Shown one piece after another: positions 18,732 to 56,021 of a stretch of 64,000 nucleotides of DNA. The position numbers and the translations under genes were made by a program. The stretch lies in the NCBI GenBank assembly GCA_965285935.1, contig OZ260661.1:139066001-139130000 (forward strand). Direction: 5' to 3'. Source of the stretch: Ophelia neglecta (taxonomy: Eukaryota). The notes beneath the pieces are model-generated. The model was not told the DNA's origin. It made no database searches and saw nothing but the letters and a program-made list of their open reading frames with translations. Position 1 is the stretch's first letter, and every line of letters starts with the position of its first letter.

Positions 18732-21700
18732 CTAATAAATACCTAGCGCAGCCAGCTGTTCAATTACACTGGGTAGATATCCACGCCTTTAAGAGAAATA
18801 TAGATTACTAAGAAGTAACGCTAATGTCAAATGTCTATATGATGTGATCATAGTTGCAACTATCTCAAAATTTGTTAATGTCATGACACGTGGCTGCTGT
18901 AAAAGAGGTTTTAATAAGCGGATTAATATACGGAACCTAAACCTGTGCGTTAGATTCTAACACATCTCATGCCTCATCATATAACAACATACATATTTCA
19001 TAGTAAATTATCACATCTGCTTACCAGGCTGCTTGTCCCTTGTTAGTTATAAGGTGGACCCCGTTCCATGTTATCTGGCCTCCAGCCCCAATAACGAATA
19101 ATACCCTGGCTTCAAATGCTTGTTTCAAAAGCTTCACTACTCGCTTACCCGCAGTAGTATCCTGTACGTATGCCTTGTGATGTTTACTACCGTACCTTAT
19201 GCCCTGTAAGTCAAGATGATAAAATTAGCAAAAAATACACCTGGATCTATTTAGATTAAATGAACTATTCTGAGATGATTTTCACTTTATAAGACGACAT
19301 TTATATTTAAATGTATACAGTATGTCAATAATGTTGTGGGTTCAGTTTGGATCAGCAACTAACTTTTGAATAAATATTTCAAATTATCCGTATTAGAAAG
19401 GATTGTGTTGATATGATGCAGTAGACATATCGTACCCGTTTTGTTTCTTAATATGCTCAGGAATGGATGATTAGTTTCATTCTCCGCCATCGGAGCTTAC
19501 AATTAAACATAAACACAACTCTTTACCTCGACTTCATGGTCGACATAGAAAGATACTTACTGTAGTCTTTACCCTCACCTGAACTTCAACCCGGAGGCTG
19601 TGCCTTGGTCGGACCTGTTTCTAAGGAATACAGATGTCTTTAAAATAAGTTTGATAAGTTACCTGTTGGTTTCCGGCAGGAAAATGAAATGATATTTCAA
19701 AAGTGCCGCCCTTGTTCCAGCATCCAGTAAGCTGGAGATCCATATGGTTGGTTGTCATAGTTCCATGTGGTTGTCCAGACGACCTGGTCGGCCTGGCTGT
19801 ACTGAGTTGGTTGAATAGAGAGTCTCCATACGCTCCAAAGTCGGAATCACTATACAGCCCATGATTTGGGTCGGTTGTATGTGCCTTGTACTGTGAATGT
19901 GGATATGGCAAAAACTGGTGTATGTTGTCTGTTTCGCCATGGTAATTTTCAACGCTTGGCGTTGTGTTCGGAATAAAATGTTCGTTCAATCTTGACGCCG
20001 ATCTCGTTTTGTAGTTAGCGTCTGGATGGGAATCGTCACGAAGTGTGTATAAATCAAGTTGTTGAAGTATAGAGAGGGCGGGCGATCTTCCGCTGCTTGA
20101 CTGCTCTCGTTGGTTGAGGTTTTTGACTGGAGCAAATGACAGGTTTGAGTCTTCCCTTGTACCGTACGAGTCGAAATCGTACTCTGGCTCCTGCGTAAAA
20201 TCTAGGTCTACATCATTGAAAGACCAGGTTCCTTGATTTAGAGAACTTTCATCGACATTTTGAGATTTAGGATGAGTTTGCAACATAGGACCCGGCAAAT
20301 TCTTATGGCCAGTGTGGACCAGTTTTTCGAGGAGCTCTCGCTTTGCCTGGTTTATATGCTGCTGATCGCCGATAATTTGGATTATTTCAGCATTGCAGTC
20401 AAAAACAACGTATTCATATTTTCGCTGCATGCCTCTAATCGTATCCGAGAGTTTACGTCCAGTGCACTGAAGTTTAGTGATGTCAATAGTTTCTTTGTGT
20501 ATTATGTCATTCAGTTCAGTTGCAATGAGTAAAACTTCCATCACACACTTGTCTACATCCTTCTTCGATCCTCTTATAAGTAAACCGTGCCCGTTCTCTT
20601 GTTCCACTGATTTGATTTTTACATCGCACAGCCTGCTTATTCTATCAAGGTCTGCCTTTCTAAACTGCTGTATATATTTGGACAACCGGTAATCTAAGTC
20701 TATTGTTTCGGTGATATGTTTGCTATTGAAAGATTCAGCTACATGGGTTAAAGTTTTAGATTGGAGTTTGTCAATGGTTTTCTTTGAGTTGCTGTCGACT
20801 ACCGATTTCATGGTCAAACTTGCAGCGTCATTTGTTGCCGTTACTTGTAACTTTCTCTGAAACGACTCGGCTAACTTCATCAAAGTAACCGACTGGTTAG
20901 TATCAATTATTTTCTTGTCGCTGTTGTCATCTAGGTTTATAGGGTGGGTCTGATTTGGCATAACACCCAAACAATCATGAAATTCAGAAACGATCAGTTT
21001 CTGTTGATTTATGTTATGTGATCTCTCTAATATCCGTACCACGACTGAAATATGAAAATGTACGCATATGCACAAGGTTTAGTACGATTCAATGTAATAT
21101 AACTTAATGTATACATTCCCTTTCTAATTGTTTTCATCGTTTACACACAAAAGAAACAACACAAAAAAATTCATAATAAGTACCTTCGTGGTCCTCATAA
21201 TGGATAAAAACACAATCTTGATCCGAATTCCTCTGGTATTGCACAATTTTTCCCCCTCCACTTCTTTGGCTTTCAAAATAGAGCTGGATTAAAAGGTCAT
21301 CAAGGCGTTTGACCCCTTCCACCTTGACAGCTGTAGACTTGCAAACCTTCTGTAGCCCTAGCATGTTACCCCGAAAAGGACGTACTCTCGTGAGTTCTCG
21401 CATCCTACTGAATTCTACAAATAACACAACACATATCACTGTATTCTATGTACAAATATGCAATCAGTAAAGCACCTGCTTTAATAAACGGGAGGCGAAG
21501 CAACAGTTCATTAGGACCGACTCCTAAAAAAGCACTGTTTTAAGTATGTTGTGTTTATGAAAGGAAATCTTGGGCAGATAGAAAAGGCGAGATTGTTCAT
21601 TCAATCAATGTGGAATATTGAGCAATAACTAATTAGCTATTTCAGTCCGCATACAAGAGGGGTTTGGCCTCTGTTTCTTTTCTTGTTTTTTGCCTCCCAA

Positions 21701-24700
21701 AGAACGCAGTGGCACTATTTCTTTTATATCATTATACATTTATAAAGAGACTCGTTATTGTCAAATGTTCATGTTGAATATAGTATTTTTTTCGAGAATT
21801 GGTTAATGATGTGAATCAAACGAGAGTGAAGATACACTAATTTTTATGTACATATACTGAACATAACTGTACAAAATTTTCTTTATATGTGAAGATCAAA
21901 TGATTTTTTTTCTGTCGGTACTTTTATATAAGAATTAAAAATATCTGTCTGGCTTAATATTAGATGCGTGGATTATCAGAAATGATATGCTATATATATA
22001 TATATTCTTCGAATGTTAATCATTTAGTCTAGTAGTCACATCTTTTTAAAGTGCAGTAGTCGCTTTACTCTTAAAGTCCTAATATGGTCTGGGTATTCAA
22101 TTAGGTCATTTCAATCTGTAAGGCTCCGTAGCTGAAGCGGGTCAAATCTTAACTGAGATTAAAATCAGAATTAAATTGCTTAATCGGCCTTAAATTGCTT
22201 AGGGTTTCTAAAAGCAGGATGCGCTCTTCCTATCCAATTTGGTCGTTAATTTATTCCTGATCAATAGAAACACGGATAAACGCAGTCTCAAGTAATCGGT
22301 TATAGACTAATATAATACCTACACGCAATACCGATTCCAGACACAAGGTACACGGCCCTCAAATTAAATGAAATAATCCACGAATGCTTATATTGGACAA
22401 ACCTATTGGACACTGGAAGGTCACCAAAGCTGTAGACATACTTTGACCCAGGATTACACCCTCGATAGGACTTGTAGCATGCTTCTCGAGAAATGCCTTT
22501 AGGTCCGTGAGCGTGCTGCCAAACGTAATATTAGTCACAAAAACTTTTTTATCATCAATACAACCATGTACATCTGGCATTATAATTGCAGCGGCAAGGG
22601 GTTTCACCGGTAAATGCATCTCCTTTGGCCACTGCGGGATACTAGCCACTCTTTCAGCAACTGGAACAATTGTTGAATAAATTAAAGTAAATAGCCTACT
22701 TTCCTGTTTAAAATTAATGGGATGATTGACAGAAATGAGTCCAGTTAATTTCTGGTGACACCTAGGGAAATATTCTACATAACTAATCTCTAAATATTTA
22801 ATGTCTTATAACTTTTAAAACCAATTATTAAAGACCCACATATAACATTTATTATCATATCAAAATGGCAATATTAAGATCGAATGTTTCCGAAAATGTA
22901 ATTGAAAATATTAATTTAACAATGCGAGGGTATCTTATAAACGCCTCCAAGTCCTTTTTCACATTCCCTACCTTTAGCAGATTTGAATGTGATGGTGACC
23001 GAGTTTGCAGATATCAGTTCGTCTGCATAGAATTCCTCTATTGTACCGCCTCCTGATCTGGGATCGCTCTCAAACCACCATTTGAGATACTCCCTTTCGA
23101 TAGCCTGGGGAATATTGGTAACAACGACTGCTAGGCTACAACCAGTGGTGACCGATTCTGTATATAGAGGAGATCTTTAAGAAAATTGTGTCCGGTCTAC
23201 TCGACAGATTAGAATATGCTATACAATAAACTAAAACTGTAGCAACTAAATTGTTATTATTAAGGTTCATCTTTAAACTATTCGCCGCGGTCATGTCAGT
23301 CAAATTGAAAGTGATACAGGAGGGAATCATTATAAGTGTATTCACACATTATCTTTCCCAATATTATTTTTTGTTGATAATAAAGAACCTATATAACATT
23401 GTTATAATAAGTTGAAACACTTTGTATCAGAAAGTTTTTTTTTTGTATCGCGAAAAGATATTTATTTGTATTTTATTCTATTGGTGGTTAAACATGATGG
23501 AAAATATAAGAATTACCTTCATTCCTGGCAGTGTCTCCCAAATGATTTCCGCACGAAAACCTACAATATATTAAAGCGATGACAGTTAAATATTTATTCA
23601 ACTTTATCAATTATGACGTTCTATTTCTTCCAATTTTCGTGGTTACCTGTTCGTAAGTCTGTTGAGGTATGGGTTTTGCACTGTTCTCAAAAATGAGGTA
23701 CTAAATGTGTACTCATAAAAAGTCGCAATGGCCCAAACATTTGCGCTCATTCATGCACTTTAAACAGAATTTTAATTTGCCATAATTCACGCTGCGCCTT
23801 AATTTCAAACTGATCGCCTCTTAGAGTAAATCAATGCTGACAACAAATCTTAACAAGTAATAATTTCGATTAACCTTTCCAAGATGACGATAAACGTGGG
23901 TCTTTTCGAAGGCACAAATACTAAACATCTGGTCATGATTTTCTCTGTATCCTGCACCTGCTTTCTCAGGCTGGTATAAGCCATAGAGTGCTGTGGTAAA
24001 CGTCGATCATTAAGAAATGAGGTTACACAGCGCCGAAAATCCTTCGATGTGTCAGGGTCATGCTCGAACTCTTTTTGGAATGGAAACTGAAAGTCAGGAT
24101 TCAGAAGACAATACAGTACACAGCCATAAGCCCAAACGTCAACCATTTTAAGTTCAGACATATTTGCGGATTTCAGATATCCAAGTATTGCCTCAGGGGC
24201 TTGGAACGGGATTGTTCCCCTGTCAACGTTTGCGGTGCGAGACGCTAGAATCGAATTAGTTTGAATGTTACAAGACCGTGCCTCTCCAAAGTCAGTTATC
24301 TTACACTCAATCACTATATTATCATCAAGAACTCCATTTTTGGTGTTCCCCACGAGGATATTGGACGGTTTAAGGTCTCGGTGAGCGATGTTGCTGTCGT
24401 GTAGGAATGCAAGTCCCTGAGCAGTGTTATTTGCAATAACCCTAATGATATCATACTCTTCTTGAAATAAACCAACAGCATCACATTCATGCAGCAATTT
24501 CAGAAGTTCACTTAGGTTTGTGACCACTTTGTTAATTCCGTATGGTTGTAAGTCGAAGGCCACATATTCCATTACAATGGCAAGTGGTTCAGCGACCGCG
24601 CCCAGTATTGACACTATATTAGGGTGATTCAATGCACAGAGTACATTCAACTCTTTGATCAATGTTTTAACGTATATTTCGTCATCGTCCTTTTGGTTCG

Positions 24701-25045
24701 TTTTCATTACACCTTTCGATTCTACAAATGAATAAGATAATTATTAAAACATTTGGTCAGTATCAAATTTTACTGTTATTTCGGACATACGATATGATAT
24801 AAGGATAACGTTAGTACACCCCGTTTAATAATGCACAATTAATTTGTGTTTATCAAACCCCTACCTCTTTTCAGTTTAAAAGTCACCAAATCTGCTCTAC
24901 CAAAAGAACCTGCCCCGATAGTCTTTTCAACCTTCAGGTCCTCTGGTGTCCATACTTTAACTCCAGCGCTTTCCAAAGCTTTTTTGCGGTTAATATGTTT
25001 ACACTTCAATTCGTGATAGTTCAGTTGGATTTTTGGTCTGTCCAT
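18732..25045 (-). CDS. Protein kinase - 3xRRM - KH - DTC fusion (RING-less DTX3L-like), ~1120 aa
   Basis: Nine exons form one open 3363-nt frame: 25045-24865, 24721-23875, 23560-23517, 23157-22972, 22660-22403, 21414-21184, 21044-19663, 19203-19025 and 18786-18732. All introns are GT-AG with matching phases. Kinase motifs are GAGSFG, VMK, KE, HRDLKPSN, DFG, APE and DVW. PARP14/DTX3L-type RRMs are WFESDPRSGGG and LYFESQRSGGG. The DTC reads GQPHGTM...FPAGNQQ / AFEARVLFVIG..ITWN / YLPSVIEQLAALGIY*. The kinase-to-RRM link depends on the donor AAG|gttaat and a 44-nt exon. Confidence 0.78.
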
Positions 25046-31990: not shown

Positions 31991-34900
31991 ATGGCAACTG
32001 GACGGAAGAGAATCCAACTTAAGCAGCCCGAGCCAGCTAAGTGCCCTGTTTCTGTCAAATTGGAAAACAAACTCGATATTGGCGTTCCAGTTTGGTCACT
32101 GGGAGATGTTGTAACAGAGAGTTACTTCGATGATAACAGTTTTGGAGCAGTCAAAACTGCTCATCATAAGACCGAACCAGGTATGAGATAATTGAAGACG
32201 TCTCAAACTATGCACTTACCTGTCCCAGAATATTGATGAAGTTTTTGATGTTTATTTTGATTTCCATCTGTTTATGTACTTAAAATAAAATTAAAATGGA
32301 AATGCGGTAAAATGTTAACATCCCAGTTATCATTGCAGCTAATTTTATTATATGTAAATAATTTTTTCATCGTTTAGGGTTGGCGGCCTTGTGGGCCACG
32401 ACGATAAAGCACACCAGTGATGAATGCTTTGCTAAACTGTTTTTGTCCGACATAGAACTCTGCCAGTTCAAACACAAACATATCCTTCAGATAGTAGCAT
32501 TGTCCATACAGCCACTAGTTGTTTATCATGAGGTAAATTCCTTCTCATTTGAAACGTACAACCAGCCAATTGTCGTCCACAATTTGGCAGATTTGTTGTA
32601 TCAATGTGACCGAGCAGAAGTAGTGCCCAGGATATATAACGACTACAATGTGCCAAGGACAGTTATAGACGCCGTGGTATCGGGCCTTGCGTTTTTACAT
32701 AGCAAAAGTGTCAATTGTGAACAATTAACCCCACAGAATATCATCATTGGCCAAAGCAGACTCGACAATGCTAAAGAAGAACTTGTCTGTAAAATTGGGG
32801 ACTTTTTACAAACCAGACGGTATTGCGAGCAGACACAAACTGGGTTGACCACCAAGTCCCTAGCGAACGAGCGCCAAACAGTCCCGTTTCAGCCACCGGA
32901 AAAATTAGTATATCAAGGGCGGTATTCTGATCCAGGGAAAACCGATGTTTGGTGTCTCGGTATGGTCACCTTCTGTGTCCTGAACCCTGATGTTCCATTT
33001 CCATTTTACCTAGAGTATACTCGCTCGCAGGCAAAGGATTTACGACAATTGGTAATTGAGAGTCTGAAGCAGAATAAGGTACCAGAAATGTCCCCTAAGT
33101 ATGACATTGGTAAATCAGAACCCCACCTCGTGGCACTGATGCAGCTTGCCTTGATCGATAACCCCGAAGAAAGACCGAGAGTGTCCGACATACAAAAATG
33201 GTAAGAAGTTCGTTGTTTTTTTTAAGTAAATATTGCAACTGAACCTGGAACCTATTCCAGATAAAAATAAGCCTAGGTTAATAGGTAATCCCAGATTAAT
33301 TGCTCAATAAGTGTTGATAATGACTTCATAAAAGGCACAATGCGGGTTTAGCCGCAAACCGGCTAAATAATTGGTTTATTGATGTCAAGCTTGGACTGTG
33401 AATTGAAAAATGGTGCGTGTCATAAATAACAAGCATTTTTTAATGATAATTCGGTCATTTCAGACAACCTTTGGCCAATAGTAAAGACAGATCTAGTAAT
33501 ATTTTGATACCTGGCTATTATCACCCGAGCTCTAAGAGCGTGGTCATAGGCAAAAATCTCTTTGTTAGTATAACAGGACTTTTTGTTAAGCCGAAGCTCA
33601 TTTTAAGCACGGTTTACACCAGTAAGGGCTTAGAGCACTTTTTATCTAACATGCCCCTGGTTATTGCGATAATAGTTTTGCTTTTAAAGGGATTTTTGAG
33701 GAATCGTTGTTGCTTTGGAGGCAAAGCTTTTATGTCCGGAGGTGGGGGTGCGGGTGGAGGTGGGATTGGGGGCTGGAGGCCTTTTCATATCCTTGATGGA
33801 GTTCGATTGAATTGCCTCCCGCTTTCATTGCTGAGGACAGTTTCTGAAAACGCCCTTGTGTCTTTATCTTACTTTCAGTTTGATAGATGGAACAGGACCC
33901 ACTTGTTATACACTGTCTAACAGACCAGAGTTACTGTGTGACTTACTGCGAAGCACTGAGTGCCAAGCTCTAATACGAAATGCACTAAGGAGCAAATCTA
34001 TAAAAATCACGATTGGCTCAAGGAACATAGTTGTTTACGCTCTGACCAGGAAAATGGCTGAAGATACAGTAACCTTTTTCAATGAAAATTTCATACACGA
34101 GAACATTGAAGTTGACACTGCTGGCAAACCGGTTTTAGTGTCAAAAAAATGGGAATCATTTTTAGCAAACCACTTGGAGGAAAACAAAGGTCTCTTGCAG
34201 ATGAAAACAAACCATGATCAAAGCACAGTGCACATTTGTGCTGCTAAAGTTATACAGATTGTAGACAAAATAAAGCATTTTCTGGAGGAAAACACCATAG
34301 TCGAGAAAAGAATCAGTATTCCAACTGAGAAAATGGAATTTGTGGAAACGCATCTTATAACATTTACTAAAACAATTGCTCAAATGCCAAATCTGTCTTT
34401 CCACTCAAATGGTGGCGATCCCTTTGTACAGATAAATGGTAACATGAGCGAAATCAAGACAAGTACCGACATGATCGAACGATACACAAAAGCCATTGCC
34501 ATTGTGGCATATGCCCTGGAAAAGCCCGCCCTAGTTTGGCACTTTCAACAGCGGAAAGGTGAAGCTAGCCTGTCCGAAATCAGTCGACACCACAATGCTA
34601 TCATTAGAATGGAAAGAGAGGAGGGGACTTTCCAATCGAGTAAGTCAACGTCTCATTTCACTCTGATTTCGTTCGCATCGTTCTGGTCTACATTGGAAGA
34701 CAATTCAATTATATTATACCTTTATTTCTGAGATATATATGGGTCCAATCCTTAAGTGTTCGCAAAGACTGGTTACAATTAATGAATACCGTGTGCTTGT
34801 ATTGCAAAGTATAAGGTAAGAATAAAACTTGAAAATTGACTATATTGTGAATGTAAATAGGCACATGATAAATATTCAAATATTACAAAGATAACCAGAA

Positions 34901-37900
34901 ACATGCTATTACAACCCTTACAAGTGAATGGACATGTAAAGAGAAACAACTATATCAATGGAGCCAAGCGCATTGGAACGTTCGGCATATTTATTCTGTG
35001 ACTGAGACAGTTACAGTGGCAGTAAAACATATAATAGGTCAAAAAATGTCTTCGAAACAGATCTTCAAATACACGTATTGTTTACGAGTTTTGAGGGATC
35101 TTATATACAATTATAATAAAGAATTGCATGGCTTTTGCTTGATTTTACCCCAAAATGAGGCGCACTGTGCTATGTATACCTCGCTATAGACATCTGGTTC
35201 GGTTGAAGTTAGCCTCAGTTAACCTTGTCTGGTTAGGATATATCTGATCAAATACTTTTAAATTAAAGTATTATCAATCTGGTTTTAGGTTTATCAAGCA
35301 GATGCATAATCATCACGGCAGAGTCCATCGATGTCGCAAAGACGTGTGTAGAAACATTAAAAGACTTATGCAAAAACATTTGGCTGGAAAAATCGGTCTC
35401 ATATCCAGGAGAAAAGAACACTGAAGATTGTCGCAATCAAGTAAGTGCATGGATTTTGCACTTTTGCCATTACCTGTCATTTTTCCTTTCCATCACTATT
35501 ATACTGTGTACATTGCTGGTTCTGTCTTTTTGGCATATTTATATTGTTTAGACCGTTCTAAAACCAATTGAAATGTGTTATGTTTATGACACAACATTAT
35601 CAAAGATCCATTATATTAGCTGGTGGTACAATTCCTGTACAAACTTCATCACTCAAGTTTCAATGGTATTGTGTCCTAGGTTTTGACTATAAAAAGAATG
35701 GCCGTTCGATTGCACGTAGACATGGATCTAGAAGGCGATGCTATAAAACTAAGCGGGGTAGGGGATCAGGTCAACGCTATGGCAGAGAACATTTACAAGG
35801 TGTTTATAGCCGGAATTGAAAAGGGAGCTGCTGAAAAGGAGCTTGCAGCCCTGACATTACTACATACGCAGGTGTGTTAAGGATTTATTTGCCTTCGCAA
35901 TGTGGCTTTTATCACCAGACTCTCCTTATATCAGATTACGTCTTTTATTGGCTAAATTCTGTGGCAAGCGTCGTTAGTATTTAAGCATGGCGAATTGGTA
36001 TTTAAGGGCCTACATACGACGGTAGCTGGTGATTACTGACCGATTAAACAGACTGGTAATAACTCTGTTTTGTCTTTCGCATATGCACTACAGTTGTATG
36101 AGCAAACTGGTAACATTTGTTTTGTTCAAAGGTGAAATGGTATTATGAAGTAAATGGACAGTTCGTAGAATATCTAGTCGATCATAACGCCACATTGGAA
36201 AGAGCCTATACCGAAGGAAGACATGATATTTCGTTAGTCTCAAATCAGGGTAGGGAAACCGTGAATGTTAGAAAAATGGAAGGTCACAACCAAAGTGGTA
36301 CATTTCGAGTTCTGAGGCAAATTCAAGGTAATGTAATGCAAAAAATGAAAAAAATATCCCTCCGAATTCAGCTACTATGTAAACTCACGAAATATATTCG
36401 ATCGGTTTTTTATTTAGAAACTTCATCAGAAAAATTGCCTGCTGAATGGTCCAAGATGGGTAAAACTGATGTCTTTATGTTGGTTGCCTTGTCCGCTGAT
36501 TCCAAGGAATTCAATGATGTCAAGTGTGAAATACTTAGGACTTCACAAAACAAGATCAAAGAAGTTCTCAAGGTAGCCATTATTCCTATAGTCAGTGCAG
36601 GTAACAACTCTACATTTTAATGTGGAGATGGTAAGGTATAGTAATTTACTACGAGTTAAACCTTAGTATCTTTGTTGGCGGACACGTCATGTCATGTTCT
36701 AACGAGTGGCATGTTCCAGTACTGCGTGTTGCTCATTCTTCAAAGAATATTAATTGATTAAGGCCACCAGAGGTCGAAGGCCATTTGTATTCCGCCAATG
36801 AAATACTCTTGTTGTTACATCGATCCTTCTAATATTATATACACTTGAATATTAAAATAAAGTGATTACTATTTAATCAATTAATTATAGCATTGAAACG
36901 TTCATCTGGTTACAAAAATGTCCATTGTTTATTTAGATTGAGCGAGTTCAGAATCCAGGCCTGTACCGGAAGTACAAAGTCCATAGAGAGGAGATGGTGA
37001 AGTCTGGTACTGCAAGACCGATAGAAAGGCAACTGTGGCATGGATCTGACATAAATGCTATAGCTAGCATCAACTTGTACGGATTTGACCGGGGATACTG
37101 TGGTAAAAACGGTAAGAATATTGAATAAAACAAGCTTTTTTGGTCCCATATTGAGACTTTTTTGGAGCGATTTAATGGCGTATTCCTGTTAAACAATTAC
37201 GCTCCTTGTGCTGGGGATCCACTTCTGTTTTTGTTTCATAAGATATATTTTGTGACAAGAACACTTTTACTTGTCTTAAATATAGGTTAAAATTCTGCAT
37301 TTTTATTAATCTTTGCCTAATGATAGTTCCATAAAACGACTCCCCTATATAGAATATATTTTTGTAGGATTGGGGTTTCTACTCTGTAACATGTAACTTT
37401 GTGGCTGTCTGTTAGTGTAGGAGTGAACATGTGAATTTATTGAATTTGTTAAAAAATATACATTACAAATACAAGAAGAAATACCATGATAGAATTCAGC
37501 ATGAAAGTTATTACTTTATGCATATTAACTCGATAAATATTAAGTATGTTTTGCTTACCAAATAGAGGATGTGTGGCCGCTGTATATGGTGCCGATTCTC
37601 GTTTATAATTTTATTATAGTTGATATTGATGAATGGTTGGCTTCACCCCATACATGAATAATGTGAGGGTAAAAAAATCTATAGTATAAGGTTGTTGAGT
37701 GGTTGAGCTATATAGCCCGAAAACCGTTCTGTATAAATAAGAATATAAATAGCCCAAGATAGTGTCACGCCAATCATAATACCTAAAAACTAGACCCATT
37801 ACAATTTTTTTCCTGAGAAGTAGATCAAATGTAATACCTTTTGTTAACATCTTGATAACTTGTTCGACTTGATCCAATCAACTTTTTTTTCTTTTCCTGT

Positions 37901-40152
37901 GAGCTTAGATTCTTTCTTGATTAACATGTTTTCCCGATGCCAAAATATTGGTATCATTGGCAAATATTATAGGAAATACAGCTCAAGATTCATTCATAAG
38001 TTCATTTACATATATTAAGGACACCAATGGCCCAAGTATAGAACTCTCGGGTTCTACACTTATTCTGTAGGTTAACACTCAATGATATAGAGATAATGTT
38101 CTATGTCGTGTAAGCAAACTATGTGCAATATATCTATAAGAATATCATGTGCCACCGTTTCAAAGGCTGGGTAAAGTCTATACATATACCCATTACAATA
38201 TTCCCATTGTTTATGAGAAGTTTATCTACCAGGCCAGTCAATGCCATATTTGAGCTGTGTTTTCCCCTAAACCCTAAACAAGAGTCTTCATACGTCACAC
38301 GCTCAAATATATAAGAAAACAGATCTAAGATGGCAGAACACAGACTGGGTGATAAGTGTTAAGAAATACGCTTTTTTCACATTTATGTACAGGAATAAAA
38401 GAAGCAAGTTTGCGTTCTGAAGGAAAAGTGGCAGTGGTCAATGACATGCTTGCATAAGTACCATCACAGCCATGACCTGTAGTTTGTAATGATGTGATCA
38501 TTGTTTTACTTTACTCATATCAGTTTCTTCAAAATACGTTGTGCGAGTAACACCTTGGCCAACACATATTTTTTGGATTTTTATGACGCTAGCCTGGGGC
38601 CTACATTTAAATACAATTGATTAAGAATGGATATAACCCGCCTGTTTGTATCATTTATAAAAACAACAGACTTGTTTTTAATACCTTATTTCTATTAAGA
38701 ACCTCTTTAATAGTTCTCCAGGTTGTCCTCAAATTACTTTGGTTTCCTTCATTTTATTATAATAATACTCTCTTTCTTGCATACGCAAAAGCTTATTCTT
38801 GGCTGCCTGATAATCTTTATAACATTCTTCAAAGATTAGGATTATTTCTAGGTTTTTCAATAATTTCAGAGCAAAAAAAATCAGCCAACGTTTTTTATTA
38901 CCTTAAAGGAATAGGTTCTTTATGAACCCTTCATTATAAGGTACATGCCATTTGCCAGTCATTAACCATCGGCCAATTTACACTTGATGTTTGTATAAAA
39001 TAATGCAATAATTCTAGCTAAATATTTCCTTGATTTACAATAACGAACATTGTTTAAGGGCTTGGAATTTTTGCAAATGCTAATTGTTTGAAAATGATCT
39101 AAAGCATGGTGTAACACGTATCATTTATTAACTTAATATTCCTATCATCATTACTTAATATTTTGTCAATTAATGTGGCAGAATTCCTCTGTATCTGTTT
39201 AGGCCTATTGATTAATCAAACAGATCCGTTGAACATGGTTTTGAAAATTCCAGAGTGAGAAAGTGAATATAAGCATTGAGAAAACTAATATTAATATTAA
39301 TCCTGGCAGACCTAAACCTGTTTATTGTCATGCAAATACCAGTAATGGATAAAAAGATAGCTCAGATGATCAAACATTTGTCCATTCTATCATAAGAAAC
39401 GTTAAGGTGGTGTTGTTTAATATATATGATGTGTTCATCAAACCTAAGAGCACCAAGTTCACAAAGTGAATACAGTGGTGCAATAATGAAGAAAAAGGTG
39501 CATATAGATTTTTAATCCGGAACATAAAATAAGGAACATAGAGTATATACAGGGAACATATGATGCACTGGGAACAACATAGATATAAACAACAAAGCTT
39601 ACAGGCTATCTGTAACCATGTTCACATAATTCAAATATTTACACAATGGAAATATTTTGCACAATTGGCATTTAATTTATTTAATCAAATCCTTTACATG
39701 AAGTACCATGTTTTTAATGAGGATACTTTTACCGGCAGTCCAACAGCGTTTATTTTCCTTCTTGAGGTTCGGACTTTCGTCCAGACTGTGGCTCTTTCTA
39801 TTGTCTTTAACATTAAATCAAATTGTTCACCCTAAACACGACTGTTATGATTTCTGATAACAATTCTGTTTTACTTTCAGCTACTGCATTTGGCAGTGGA
39901 GTTTATTTTGCTGCCAACGCGTCCTATTCATACAGTTATGCCAAAGCCGACAGCAGCGGAAAAAGGTACATGTACCATTGTAATGTGTTGACCGGAGATT
40001 TCGCTCAAGGACACTCATCTATGAGAGTGACGCCGATTAAGAATGGATTAATTAAATTTGATTCAGTTGTAGACAATACCAAGTCGCCAAGTATATTTGT
40101 AATATTCAACGATGCACAGGCATATCCAGGGTATTTAATCACATTCAAATAA
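31991..40152 (+). CDS. PARP14: Pseudokinase - KH - WWE - PARP catalytic (mono-ART) fusion, PARP14/15-like, ~971 aa
   Basis: Nine exons form one open 2916-nt frame: 31991-32180, 32378-33200, 33879-34639, 35289-35440, 35680-35871, 36132-36327, 36418-36572, 36937-37111 and 39881-40152. WWE reads VKWYYE...FVEY...LERAY. The ART reads IERVQNP...LWHGS...GFDRGYCGKN/ATAFGSGVYFA...FDSVVDN..SPSIFVIF..AQAYPGYLITF* (H-Y-I triad). The symbol denotes the subfamily only. Confidence 0.85.
37600..39500 (-). mobile_element. Degenerate CR1/L2-type LINE in the last PARP intron
   Basis: Minus-strand remnants include IFANDTNI (FADD-like, ~37945-37966), SILGPL (~38030-38050) and endonuclease-like segments near 39150-39400. 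Many stops are present. Confidence 0.65.
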
Positions 40153-52421: not shown

Positions 52422-55400
52422 AAGTTCCTTCGGAGCTCCCTCTGTCCAGAGTTCTCAACATAACAAAACAGACAGCGGTCGGATTTTCGGTGGCGTCTCT
52501 AATACAACGGGTGTCTCCAATAGACTGTTGGAAAACCCAAGAAGTACCACCTTGTTGAGCGGAGAGCCAAATTGCAAACCAACGAGTTCATTCAGAAACA
52601 TTTTCAATTTGGACTCGTCTGGTAAGGCCTAATATTGTTATTATTTATGTTCTATGTAAATGCTTGCATATTTTAGTTTCAGTGTTAAATGAAACATATA
52701 TTAATTTAATAAACTAATTGAAATGGAAGTGTGTTTAAAAAATTCAAATAATTAATAGCAAGTCATAATGAATTCTAATAATATGAATTATAATAATAAA
52801 CAAATCACTTAACAGTAACATCAAATCGCGTTCAATCTTTTACGAATTATCAGGAACGATCTTTAAGTTTTACCCTCTTTATGGGACTGACCTAACGACA
52901 ACGAATGTGTCGATTAAAACCCTTCATCAGTGTATAACGGCTATGCCGCTCTACGAGAACAAAAGCTTGGAAGAACTGAGGCTTGAGGACTATAACAAAG
53001 AAAGGCCAGTTTGCAGTTTGTCAACTTTTCAAAGTTTAACCACAGTACCTACTTTGCCGCTTTTATGAACATAAATGTTCACTTTGACGTTTATTACAAG
53101 CTCGTTTGATACTTTGACCGATGCATGCAAGTCTTTTTATTTTAAAGTTATAATAACATGAGCAATTAAACAGTGTCCAATTCCTTTTCAAATACTTTTT
53201 TTCTAAATAAATGAAAACGTCTGTCAACTCAAGCATAAATCAACGGTTTCGTTTTAGTCAATGGATAACTGGGATGACTTCTTAAATAGTAATTACAGTG
53301 AAACCTGTAAATTAAGACCACCTCGTCTGATTTTGGAGCTGGTCTGTTTAGACAGGTTGGTAAACATTGAAAGTATACATCAACATACTCATATTGGTGG
53401 TCTGAATTTACAGGTGGTCTTATTAGAGAGGTGGTCTTTAAGGCAGGTTTCACTGTACTACTTTATCCACATTATCATTAGATTTGTGTAAAAGGGACCA
53501 CAACACATTTAATAATTGAATACATTAGGGGTCATAAACGCAGCCGACTCACAAAACATTCAGTTCCCAGTAGACAATTGACAGAAGAAGTTGACATTAA
53601 ATTTTGCGCGATGTGAGTCAACTGTCAAAGAAAGGACTTTGTGGCCCTGGCAGTATAATAAATTTCGTTTCTGGGATTTTATGGAACAGGTAGCATAAAC
53701 CATTCATCATGTTACTGGGGTTTTCTCATGTTAAGTATATATTGTACTATCCTCATGACAACCACTTATTTTTTCATTTTAGGAAGGGTCCTCAGAGCGG
53801 AAGTACAAAAAGTCTGTTTGTAATTGGCAGAATGCCCGAGAAAGGTTGTAGTCGTGTGGGTCATAAAAAGTAAGTTTACTGACATTAATATTTATGACTT
53901 ATTCGTTATTACATTTTTTTGCTTGGTCGGGCAATTTTATCGAGAACTAAAAATATTTTGCAGAAATGATTAATCGGGGTACAACTATTTTAGCTTATTT
54001 GGATTTGGTTCCAAATACTGCCATTACTTAAGGGATGACCGCAAGTTAAAAGCGCCTGCCCAAGATGCGGTAAAACGAACAGAAAAAGGTATACATTTAG
54101 GGAATTTAATTCCACTATTGCGCTGTACACACGTTATTAAATTTTTTTTTTTTTGAAGTTCCATAGAAATTTGGGAACTATTTTGGCCTCTTTGTGATTA
54201 CTTTGAAATTCTTACCCTAATGGAACCTTTTTGAATCGTGGTAAACCTGATACGATTTTTGAGGGAAATCAAATTCACGGATCAAGTAACATAGCCTAAT
54301 TAATTCAATTAACGAGGTTGGATAGTTTTTGCTTCATACTCCTCTCCCCATTTCGAGTTACCAATATCTGCGGATGAATTGGTCTCCAAAACTACCTGTA
54401 AACCCTACCGAACCTGCTAAACACATGGCATTTTAATAAGCAACAAAAAATACTGGAAACAAACTTCTAATTGTTGAGCGATCTCATTCACTGACTGTAC
54501 TAGATAGTGTTCATTATAACCATTGGTCAACGAGGTTTTAAATGAATTTCATAATGTGAGTTTGGTGTTACGAGATTGACGATGAATACCCGATAATTGA
54601 ATGCTTCACACGTATAAGGTGCCACCCCTATTACAATCATTTACAAGGAACTACCGTTCTTGAATTAATTTTAAATCAATCTAATCACATTTTTCACTTT
54701 CATTATCACTCATGCACATTTCAGGAGTCGTACTAGACGAATAAAACGGCCTTGCGGGAAACAGGATAAAGAGTTAGCACTTGGATCCAAAGGTAATTCC
54801 AGGCCTATGTAAGAAATAATCGGTATAATATCAAAAGATATTTCTGGCCACCTAGTTTCTAGTTATATATTTATATATATTTATATAATGCTGACCCCTT
54901 GTCTGTTGTATTTACATGCTACATAGGGATTCACGAGGCCTCGGCAGTGAAACAGGATAAAGAGTCAGCACTTAGACCCAAAGGTAGTACTAGGCCTATG
55001 TAAGAAATAATCGATATAATATCAAAAGATATTTTGTGGCCACCTAGTTTCTATATTTTTATATTATCATATTTATATATATATATATATATATTTTTTT
55101 ATATATATTTATATAATGCTGACCCCCTGTCTGTTGTATTTACATGCTACATAGGGACTCACGAGGCCTCGGCTGTGAAACAGGATAAAGAGTCAGCACT
55201 TAGACCCAAAGGTAGTACTAGGCCTATGTAAGAAATAATCGATATAATATCAAAAGATATTTTGTGGCCACCTAGTTTCNNNNNNNNNNNNNNNNNNNNN
55301 NNNNNNNNNNNNNNNNNNNNNNNNNNNNNNNNNNNNNNNNNNNNNNNNNNNNNNNNNNNNNNNNNNNNNNNNNNNNNNNNNNNNNNNNNNNNNNNNNNNN

Positions 55401-56021
55401 NNNNNNNNNNNNNNNNNNNNNNNNNNNNNNNNNNNGTCCGTTGTATTTACAGGCTGCTTACGGACTCGCGAGGCCTCAGCATTGCTGGGATCGTGTGACT
55501 CTCGCCACCGCCCCTTATTCAGCCACAGAAACTTGGTAAGTCATACATTGTATATCTCAATCATAACAACATTCAGTATGTCAATGATTGTTAATTTTTA
55601 GTAGCTCCTCGATGTTTTGTTGATTTAAAATCAAATCATGATTTTTATCTATATGTTCACCAAATAAATAAAATACTTTTACACGCCGAAAATGAAATTA
55701 AAGGAGGTGATGATATTTCTTTTCCACTTGAGGATCATTTCCCCAAACATTTGTTTTTTCAAGACACAGCAGCAAGACACGGTGAGGCCAAAGCCATCTA
55801 AGTTCAATGGGTTTAAAGGATGCTACATTGCCCCGAAAGGTACTGTTGGTACACCGGTCAAAGAGAAAACAGTGACTGACGACAGACACTGGAAAGTCGA
55901 TTCCCGCGGGACAGACCCTGTCCATGGCTCTACAATGACCATCAACGTGTCAGATGCGAATGTTGAGAAGACCGTTCCACTCAATAGTAGCAAAACCATT
56001 AATAGGAACGGAAGTAAATAA
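52422..56021 (+). CDS. Nup98 N-terminus-derived protein (degenerate FG + GLEBS) with a repeated-exon C-terminus; start codon not located
   Basis: Phase-consistent exons are 52422-52621, 52854-53004 (GC donor), 53783-53869, 54725-54792, 54927-54983, 55155-55211, [gap], 55453-55535 and 55764-56021. The translation includes [55 protein letters not shown], compared with Nup98 GTTIKFNPPTGTD...[34 protein letters not shown]. Confidence 0.65.
53296..53455. mobile_element. Tc1/pogo-type MITE
   Basis: TA|cagtgaaacctg ... caggtttcactg|TA. Confidence 0.85.
54758..55480 (+). repeat. Tandem exon-intron repeat (~190-230-bp units) running into an assembly gap
   Basis: gaaacaggataaagagt..cactt..cccaaag|gta...ggccacctagtttc occurs three times, with a diverged further unit after the gap. 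Confidence 0.9.
55280..55435. other. Assembly gap (156 N)
   Basis: Run of N. Confidence 1.

Follow-up and report, generated by a model that had tools for sequence, protein, structure and literature searches.

Is the protein kinase encoded on the minus strand at this locus of Ophelia neglecta a protein of its own, or the first part of a longer one that continues into RRM exons of the DTX3L/PARP14 type? The question concerns positions 25045-18732 of the window, by which the whole 64,000-nucleotide (nt) stretch C1:139066001-139130000 is meant. In the list of open reading frames (ORFs) the kinase stands alone, because its unspliced frame ends 8 codons past the kinase splice donor, at the TAA 23850. 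The first-pass annotation, which rightly noted the separate ORF, nevertheless proposed that the kinase is spliced to the RRMs through a 44-nt bridging exon. The comparisons reported here strongly support this splice at the sequence level. Region 25045-18732 can accordingly be modelled as one nine-exon gene for a protein of ~1120 amino acids (aa), consisting of a kinase, a linker, three RRMs, a KH region, and a divergent, RING-less Deltex C-terminal (DTC) domain, and we consider it probable that this fused product is made. Judged by its paralogs, the gene belongs to a lineage-specific family as an old, divergent copy and is not a unique fusion.

Gene model and reading frame

Nine minus-strand exons with AG/GT sites join into one uninterrupted frame, which starts at the ATG 25045, comprises 1120 codons, and closes with the TAG at 18734-18732. 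This joined model (1120 aa) was used for frame checks and local comparison, and external searches were run exon by exon. Coding exon 1 (25045-24865, 181 nt) begins with the ATG at 25045, carries the start of the kinase N-lobe including the glycine loop GAGSFG, and ends at the donor GAG/gtaggg (the slash marks the exon border); the exon and its start methionine are kept in the paralogs, according to tblastn and the paralog ORFs. The kinase exon itself (24721-23875, 847 nt) contains the VMK lysine, the alphaC glutamate, HRDLKPSN, DFG, and APE, and closes with the phase-2 donor AAG/gttaat. Only if this donor at 23875 were left unused would the read-through tail at 23874-23850 be translated, i.e., 8 codons followed by the TAA at 23850-23852. 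In the paralogs, a stop likewise follows directly after the kinase donor.

The bridging exon (23560-23517) is bounded by ttgtag and gtaatt, is entered in phase 2 and left in phase 1, contains no stop, and would contribute a 14-residue linker. It is followed by RRM exon A (23157-22972), which encodes the first part of RRM1 behind the phase-1 acceptor atacag/AATCGG and matches RRM_PARP14_3 with E = 5e-6 and 26.9 bits. Joined together, the first four exons have cumulative phases of 1, 2, 1, and 1 and are free of stops, so that the donor, micro-exon, and acceptor phases given in the first-pass annotation were all reproduced.

As for a separate start of the RRM part, exon A has no in-frame methionine, as had also been claimed, and reading back from its acceptor one meets a stop in the same frame after 7 codons, at 23179. 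The only ATG within the 44-nt exon is out of frame. Another first exon feeding 23157, which had been named as a possible objection, was looked for between the kinase and exon A, and none of the 14 ATG-to-GT candidates there has an acceptable donor.

An in-frame join is not significant by itself, because chance yields several candidates of length 3n+2 in an intron: under loose splice-site filters, the 717-nt gap between the kinase and exon A holds four open ones. What validates the 44-nt exon as the right candidate is the presence of a homologous exon of the same length in the paralogs.

Comparative support for the join

The genome searched was the species' own (762 Mb). It contains 62 matches to the kinase exon and 85 to RRM exon A, none of the latter with a stop. 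At least 45 kinase paralogs have RRM exons downstream on the same strand, and among the paralogs with kinase identity of at least 56%, all but one have them within 0.3-1.9 kb, also on the same strand. These paralogs, whose kinases are 56-65% identical, are located at C1 136-140 Mb, C5 111-116 Mb, and C9 15.8-19.8 Mb. The order of first exon, kinase exon, and RRM exon is the same in all loci fetched (30/30).

The junction was compared in the 27 loci with an RRM exon within reach. In every one of them the kinase donor is in phase 2 and does not shift from its codon, directly after the motif ...RPxFxxIxx, and the RRM exon starts with a phase-1 acceptor, which means that direct splicing from kinase to RRM would be out of frame in all 27. 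An open exon between AG and GT is also present in 27/27 loci, always with a length of exactly 44 nt and located 117-141 nt after the donor in the paralogs, while the gap around it ranges from 317 to 1362 nt. Thus, the paralogs share with the window gene the two-exon kinase, the phase-2 donor, the 44-nt exon, and the phase-1 RRM exon. They differ from it in their stronger donors (AG/GTAGGC, GTAAGC, GTATGC, and GTAGGT) and in the position of the window copy on a long branch of its own.

The small exon of the window is homologous to those of the paralogs in position, length, and start (GTTT...), and the linkers follow a loosely conserved pattern, F/L-K/N-x5-E-D/N-x4-T. For this comparison the small exons were anchored at their splice sites. 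A MAFFT alignment of whole introns was rejected, since differences in intron length put the small exons out of register.

A contig from another species (ENA ERZ25069296) carries the same arrangement with a different exon length. Its kinase, 46% identical to that of the window, ends at the phase-2 donor AA/GTTAGT and is followed by a 56-nt exon, also of the 3n+2 class, and by a phase-1 RRM exon; the join is stop-free. Behind the first RRM exon this contig continues with another one and then with a macrodomain and ankyrin repeats. The other kinase relatives from other species that were inspected are short contigs or distant kinases without RRM exons. The HRD, DFG, and APE motifs are intact in 30/30 paralog kinases and in the ERZ25069296 kinase. 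The frame-correcting length of the small exon is kept across lineages while the introns change freely, which is hard to explain except by kinase and RRMs being one chain.

With regard to the first-pass annotation, the claim of a splice through the 44-nt exon therefore gained the 27/27 paralog loci and the 56-nt exon of the other species. In the window copy itself, this splice would have to start from the weakest donor of the family. Likewise, the join of kinase and RRMs into one fused locus is supported, but the locus is not unique, being one of at least 45 family genes.

State of the window copy

Several observations weigh against a fused product of the window gene. Its kinase donor, AAG/GTTAAT, is the weakest of the family and departs from consensus at +3 and +5, and the first bridging intron measures 314 nt, compared with 117-141 nt in the paralogs. 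The unspliced kinase frame ends 8 codons past the donor, and AATAAA- and ATTAAA-like hexamers are seen by eye downstream of that stop. A search of sequencing runs for the locus found no RNA run, only three DNA runs from one sample, whose contigs show no joints. The identity of the small exon to its paralogs is only 36-57% at the nucleotide level, versus 30-39% in the upstream flank, with the window copy as the most divergent. Furthermore, according to the kinase tree, the 27 loci amount to about six independent lineages, the copies of the C5 array being near-identical. Finally, no public protein with a kinase and an RRM was found, in searches that included a homologue search whose length window excluded fusions of ~1100 aa.

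Because of the weak donor, the enlarged intron, and the near stop with its hexamers, a kinase-only product has to be considered. In its strict form, the fusion would have lapsed in this copy: with the GTTAAT donor unused, a stand-alone kinase of ~350 aa would end at TAA 23850, and the RRM-KH-DTC part would either go untranslated or come from a separate transcript, with an internal methionine of exon B or C as its start. The donor strength, the stop, the poly(A)-signal-like hexamers, and the intron length all fit this scenario, as does the fact that distant kinase relatives, at ~35% identity, stand alone as proteins of 360-410 aa. However, exon A would then have no start codon, yet it is open and scores as an RRM. 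The small exon has changed neither in length nor in its two splice dinucleotides, and its frame is still open and its acceptor pyrimidine-rich, although the window kinase stands alone on a long branch of the kinase tree. The T at +3 is not peculiar to this donor either, since it also occurs in the donor of exon B (TAG/GTTTGT) and in the kinase donor of ERZ25069296 (GTTAGT). In addition, the contigs of the three DNA runs show no variation at the donor, at either acceptor, or within the small exon. Altogether, we regard a lapsed fusion as rather unlikely.

The same small exon also allows for both products. If it were a cassette exon, its inclusion would give the kinase-RRM-KH-DTC protein and its skipping a frameshift and kinase only: the direct join 23875^23157 reads 7 codons and then meets the TAG at 23136-23138. 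Exons as short as 44 nt are often regulated, and all lineages, that of the other species among them, have retained the 3n+2 length class. A constitutive exon, however, accounts for this conservation equally well, and production of both forms appears improbable. That the exon serves as a switch between a kinase-only and a full-length protein is speculation.

The differences of the three DNA runs from the reference bear on a further alternative, namely that the locus is a decaying pseudogene, or that its splice-like sites arose by chance, with no fused protein made. The kinase has 3 synonymous and 0 nonsynonymous variants, and the rest of the gene has 9 synonymous and 13 nonsynonymous ones; exon D has 10 nonsynonymous and 7 synonymous variants, which suggests that selection on the C-terminal half is relaxed or diversifying. 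This high nonsynonymous polymorphism (13 to 9) fits decay, and the divergent DTC, the missing RING, and the multiple 3n+2 candidates that arise by chance point in the same direction. On the other hand, nine exons with canonical sites keep the 1120-aa frame open, none of the kinase motifs is damaged, no exon shows a stop or an indel in any of the three runs, and the small exon shares its position, length, and GTTT... start with those of the paralogs. Decay or chance is thus a very remote explanation, and a single gene with a fused product remains the preferred reading.

Domain content

According to Pfam, the kinase exon matches Pkinase (PF00069) with 124.7 bits against a cut-off of 31.7 (E = 5.7e-36). 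The catalytic motifs are complete in the translation: GAGSFG, VMK, IKELNVL, HRDLKPSN with its aspartate and downstream asparagine, DFG, and APE. The earlier statement that all of them are present thus holds. The closest kinases of solved structure are CDK2, STK33, IRE1, MLK1, and LRRK2, with E values from 1e-13 to 1e-11 and no near solved relative among them. By its motifs, the domain is a catalytically intact Ser/Thr kinase of an orphan type.

Exons B-F were placed by means of AG/GT sites and the frames of long ORFs. Exon B (22660-22403) covers the end of RRM1 and the first part of RRM2, with a weak RRM_PARP14_3 match and the donor TAG/GTTTGT. Exon C (21414-21184) completes RRM2, opens RRM3, and matches RRM_PARP14_3 with E = 2.8e-6. 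The gene therefore has three RRM units, each split by a phase-1 intron, and the VAERV motif, shared with paralog ORFs, is recreated over the junction of exons A and B. Since exons A (26.9 bits) and C (27.7 bits) both exceed the curated cut-off of RRM_PARP14_3, the RRM assignment, including the DTX3L/PARP14 type first proposed for it, is solid as far as sequence profiles go. RRM1 is without the canonical aromatic RNP residues (VVVTNI and SVTITF, as read from the translation), and Pfam reports no match to a double-stranded RNA-binding domain (dsRBD) in the exons of the kinase-RRM gene.

Exon D (21044-19663, 1382 nt) contains the end of RRM3, a KH-like region of the DTX3L type, a low-complexity stretch, and the start of the DTC. 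Its KH region shares 36% identity (E = 3e-24) with part of a paralog for which Pfam gives KH_DTX3L, although that part itself matches weakly (E = 0.004), and the KH assignment is accordingly the weaker one. The DTC start within exon D has E = 0.069. The core of the divergent DTC is located in exon E (19203-19025), where a PF18102 search of the own genome gives a match at 19039-19203 of the window (33.7 bits against a 25-bit cut-off, E = 2e-5), compared with values near 1e-30 for other DTC copies of the same genome. Exon F (18786-18732) completes the DTC tail and ends with the TAG stop at 18734-18732.

No RING family is found in exon D by Pfam at E up to 0.1, whereas the same tool shows three RINGs in a paralog ORF with E down to 3.5e-25. 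Pfam likewise detects no macrodomain, WWE, or ART domain in the exons of the kinase-RRM gene.

Family and genomic neighbourhood

Tandem kinase-RRM arrays are located at C5:111.3-115.9 Mb, C9:15.8-19.8 Mb, and C1:136.2-140.5 Mb. The C5 copies carry RRMs and then long FN3 arrays, and the C9 copies RRMs plus ankyrin repeats; the C1 copies carry Macro, RING, and DTC domains. The paralog at C1 139.63 Mb, for instance, encodes RRMs, KH, Macro, three RINGs, and DTC. Within it, the interval from KH-Macro to RING-DTC contains retroelement-like ORFs at C1:139630800-139631820 (minus strand), recognised by translation only. The C5 copies are near-identical recent duplicates with tree branch lengths of 0.003-0.02. 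The DTC is massively multiplied, with 110 PF18102 matches in the genome, nearly all of them at C1:136-140 Mb, the window included.

A second kinase module lies at 31991-33202 of the window on the plus strand, head-to-head with the first and ~6.9 kb away. It is a pseudokinase, having NCEQ in place of HRD, DFL in place of DFG, and PPE in place of APE. Its phase-2 donor ATG/gtaaga is at the same codon position and can join a phase-2 acceptor at 33880 directly, with no bridging exon. The plus-strand neighbour gene into which this join would lead has a WWE domain (36117-36617) and a PARP match at 39874-40002. Elsewhere in the window, positions 55280-55435 are a run of 156 N, either an assembly gap or masked sequence.

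Possible function

Read across the loci, the kinase, the small 3n+2 exon, and the RRMs are the constant N-terminal head of the family, and the C-terminal modules vary. An innate-immune role of the family is likely. In the mechanism that we favour, the RRM/KH part would serve for docking, either to single-stranded nucleic acid or to partners in an ADP-ribose-ubiquitin hub of the PARP9/PARP14/DTX3L type; such proteins are also encoded in the surrounding cluster. The resulting clustering, or local concentration, would activate the kinase, which would then signal in an innate-immune-type response. Since the RING is absent, E3 activity is not expected of the window copy, which by its domain content probably acts as a kinase and reader/adaptor and not as an E3 ligase.

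A much broader proposal may be formulated, which we consider doubtful when taken as a whole. According to it, the cassette of kinase, 3n+2 exon, and RRM would be the signalling head of an unrecognised, fast-expanding family of invertebrate innate-immune sensors. Their swappable C-termini (Macro-RING-DTC, FN3 arrays, ankyrin repeats, or RING-less DTC) might give ligand or partner specificity, and their RRM/KH part might sense single-stranded nucleic acid or ADP-ribosylated targets. In the same proposal, the frame-shifting small exon might switch between a free kinase and a tethered sensor-kinase, and the window gene, together with the head-to-head pseudokinase-PARP gene, might be a kinase/pseudokinase counterpart of the DTX3L-PARP9 heterodimer.

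Comparison with known systems

Regarding public sequences, ~95 proteins of a 1.8-billion-protein representative library match the kinase at E < 1e-30. No RRM, KH, or DTC was found in the 150 best kinase relatives (local phmmer) or in 18 long ones (Pfam). The homologue search, with a length window that excluded fusions of ~1100 aa, gave no match for exon D and only ORF-level or distant unnamed proteins for the kinase exon, and the Protein Atlas gave generic kinase clusters only. In the literature covered, which is incomplete, no description of a kinase fused to DTX3L/PARP14-type modules was found, and the reviews and evolutionary studies of DTX3L, PARP9, and PARP14 mention none.

PKR/EIF2AK2, which combines two dsRBDs with a kinase, was the model for the nucleic-acid-responsive kinase suggested in the first-pass annotation. 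It resembles the window gene in concept, as both link modules of a nucleic-acid-binding type to a Ser/Thr kinase in an antiviral context. In the window gene, however, the order of the modules is reversed, RRM/KH modules of the single-strand type replace the dsRBDs, and the kinase has no specific similarity to PKR, which is missing from the 60 best solved-structure matches listed for it. Given these differences and an RRM1 without RNP aromatics, the comparison is an analogy only.

Vertebrate PARP14 (3 RRMs, 8 KH domains, 3 macrodomains, WWE, and ART) has the same three tandem RRMs of the RRM_PARP14 type followed by a KH-like region, and macrodomains occur in paralogs of the window gene and in the ERZ25069296 locus. 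Unlike PARP14, the window gene is without macrodomain, WWE, and ART, and has a kinase at its N-terminus. With vertebrate DTX3L (RRM, KH-like, RING, and DTC) it shares the order of a PARP14/DTX3L-type RRM, a KH-like region, and a C-terminal DTC. It is also placed head-to-head with a PARP-type gene, as DTX3L is with PARP9; this arrangement is described for human DTX3L/PARP9 (PMC13224862; bioRxiv 10.64898/2026.04.23.720386). It differs from DTX3L in its N-terminal active-type kinase, a feature of no DTX3L described so far, in having three RRMs instead of one, in the RING not being detected, and in its divergent DTC.

In vertebrates, DTX3L, PARP9, and PARP14 form an antiviral hub that links ADP-ribosylation, ubiquitin, and nucleic acids, and to which the contribution of the RRM/KH regions has yet to be settled (PMC13224862, PMC11460948). 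In DTX3L and PARP14, these regions are believed to bind nucleic acids of the single-stranded kind and to bring the two proteins into contact, and DTX3L can ubiquitinate single-stranded nucleic acids (PMC11460948, PMC11467253, PMC13224862). A kinase welded to an RRM/KH head in dozens of genes with varied tails suggests that this head is a portable unit for recognition or docking, and a phosphorylation read-out of such natural kinase fusions could reveal what the head recognises. For annotation, the 44-nt frame-correcting exon decides between one gene and two at dozens of loci. Compared with these known systems, the novelty of the window gene would consist in an active-type kinase added to an otherwise known DTX3L/PARP14-type protein, within a large expanded family.

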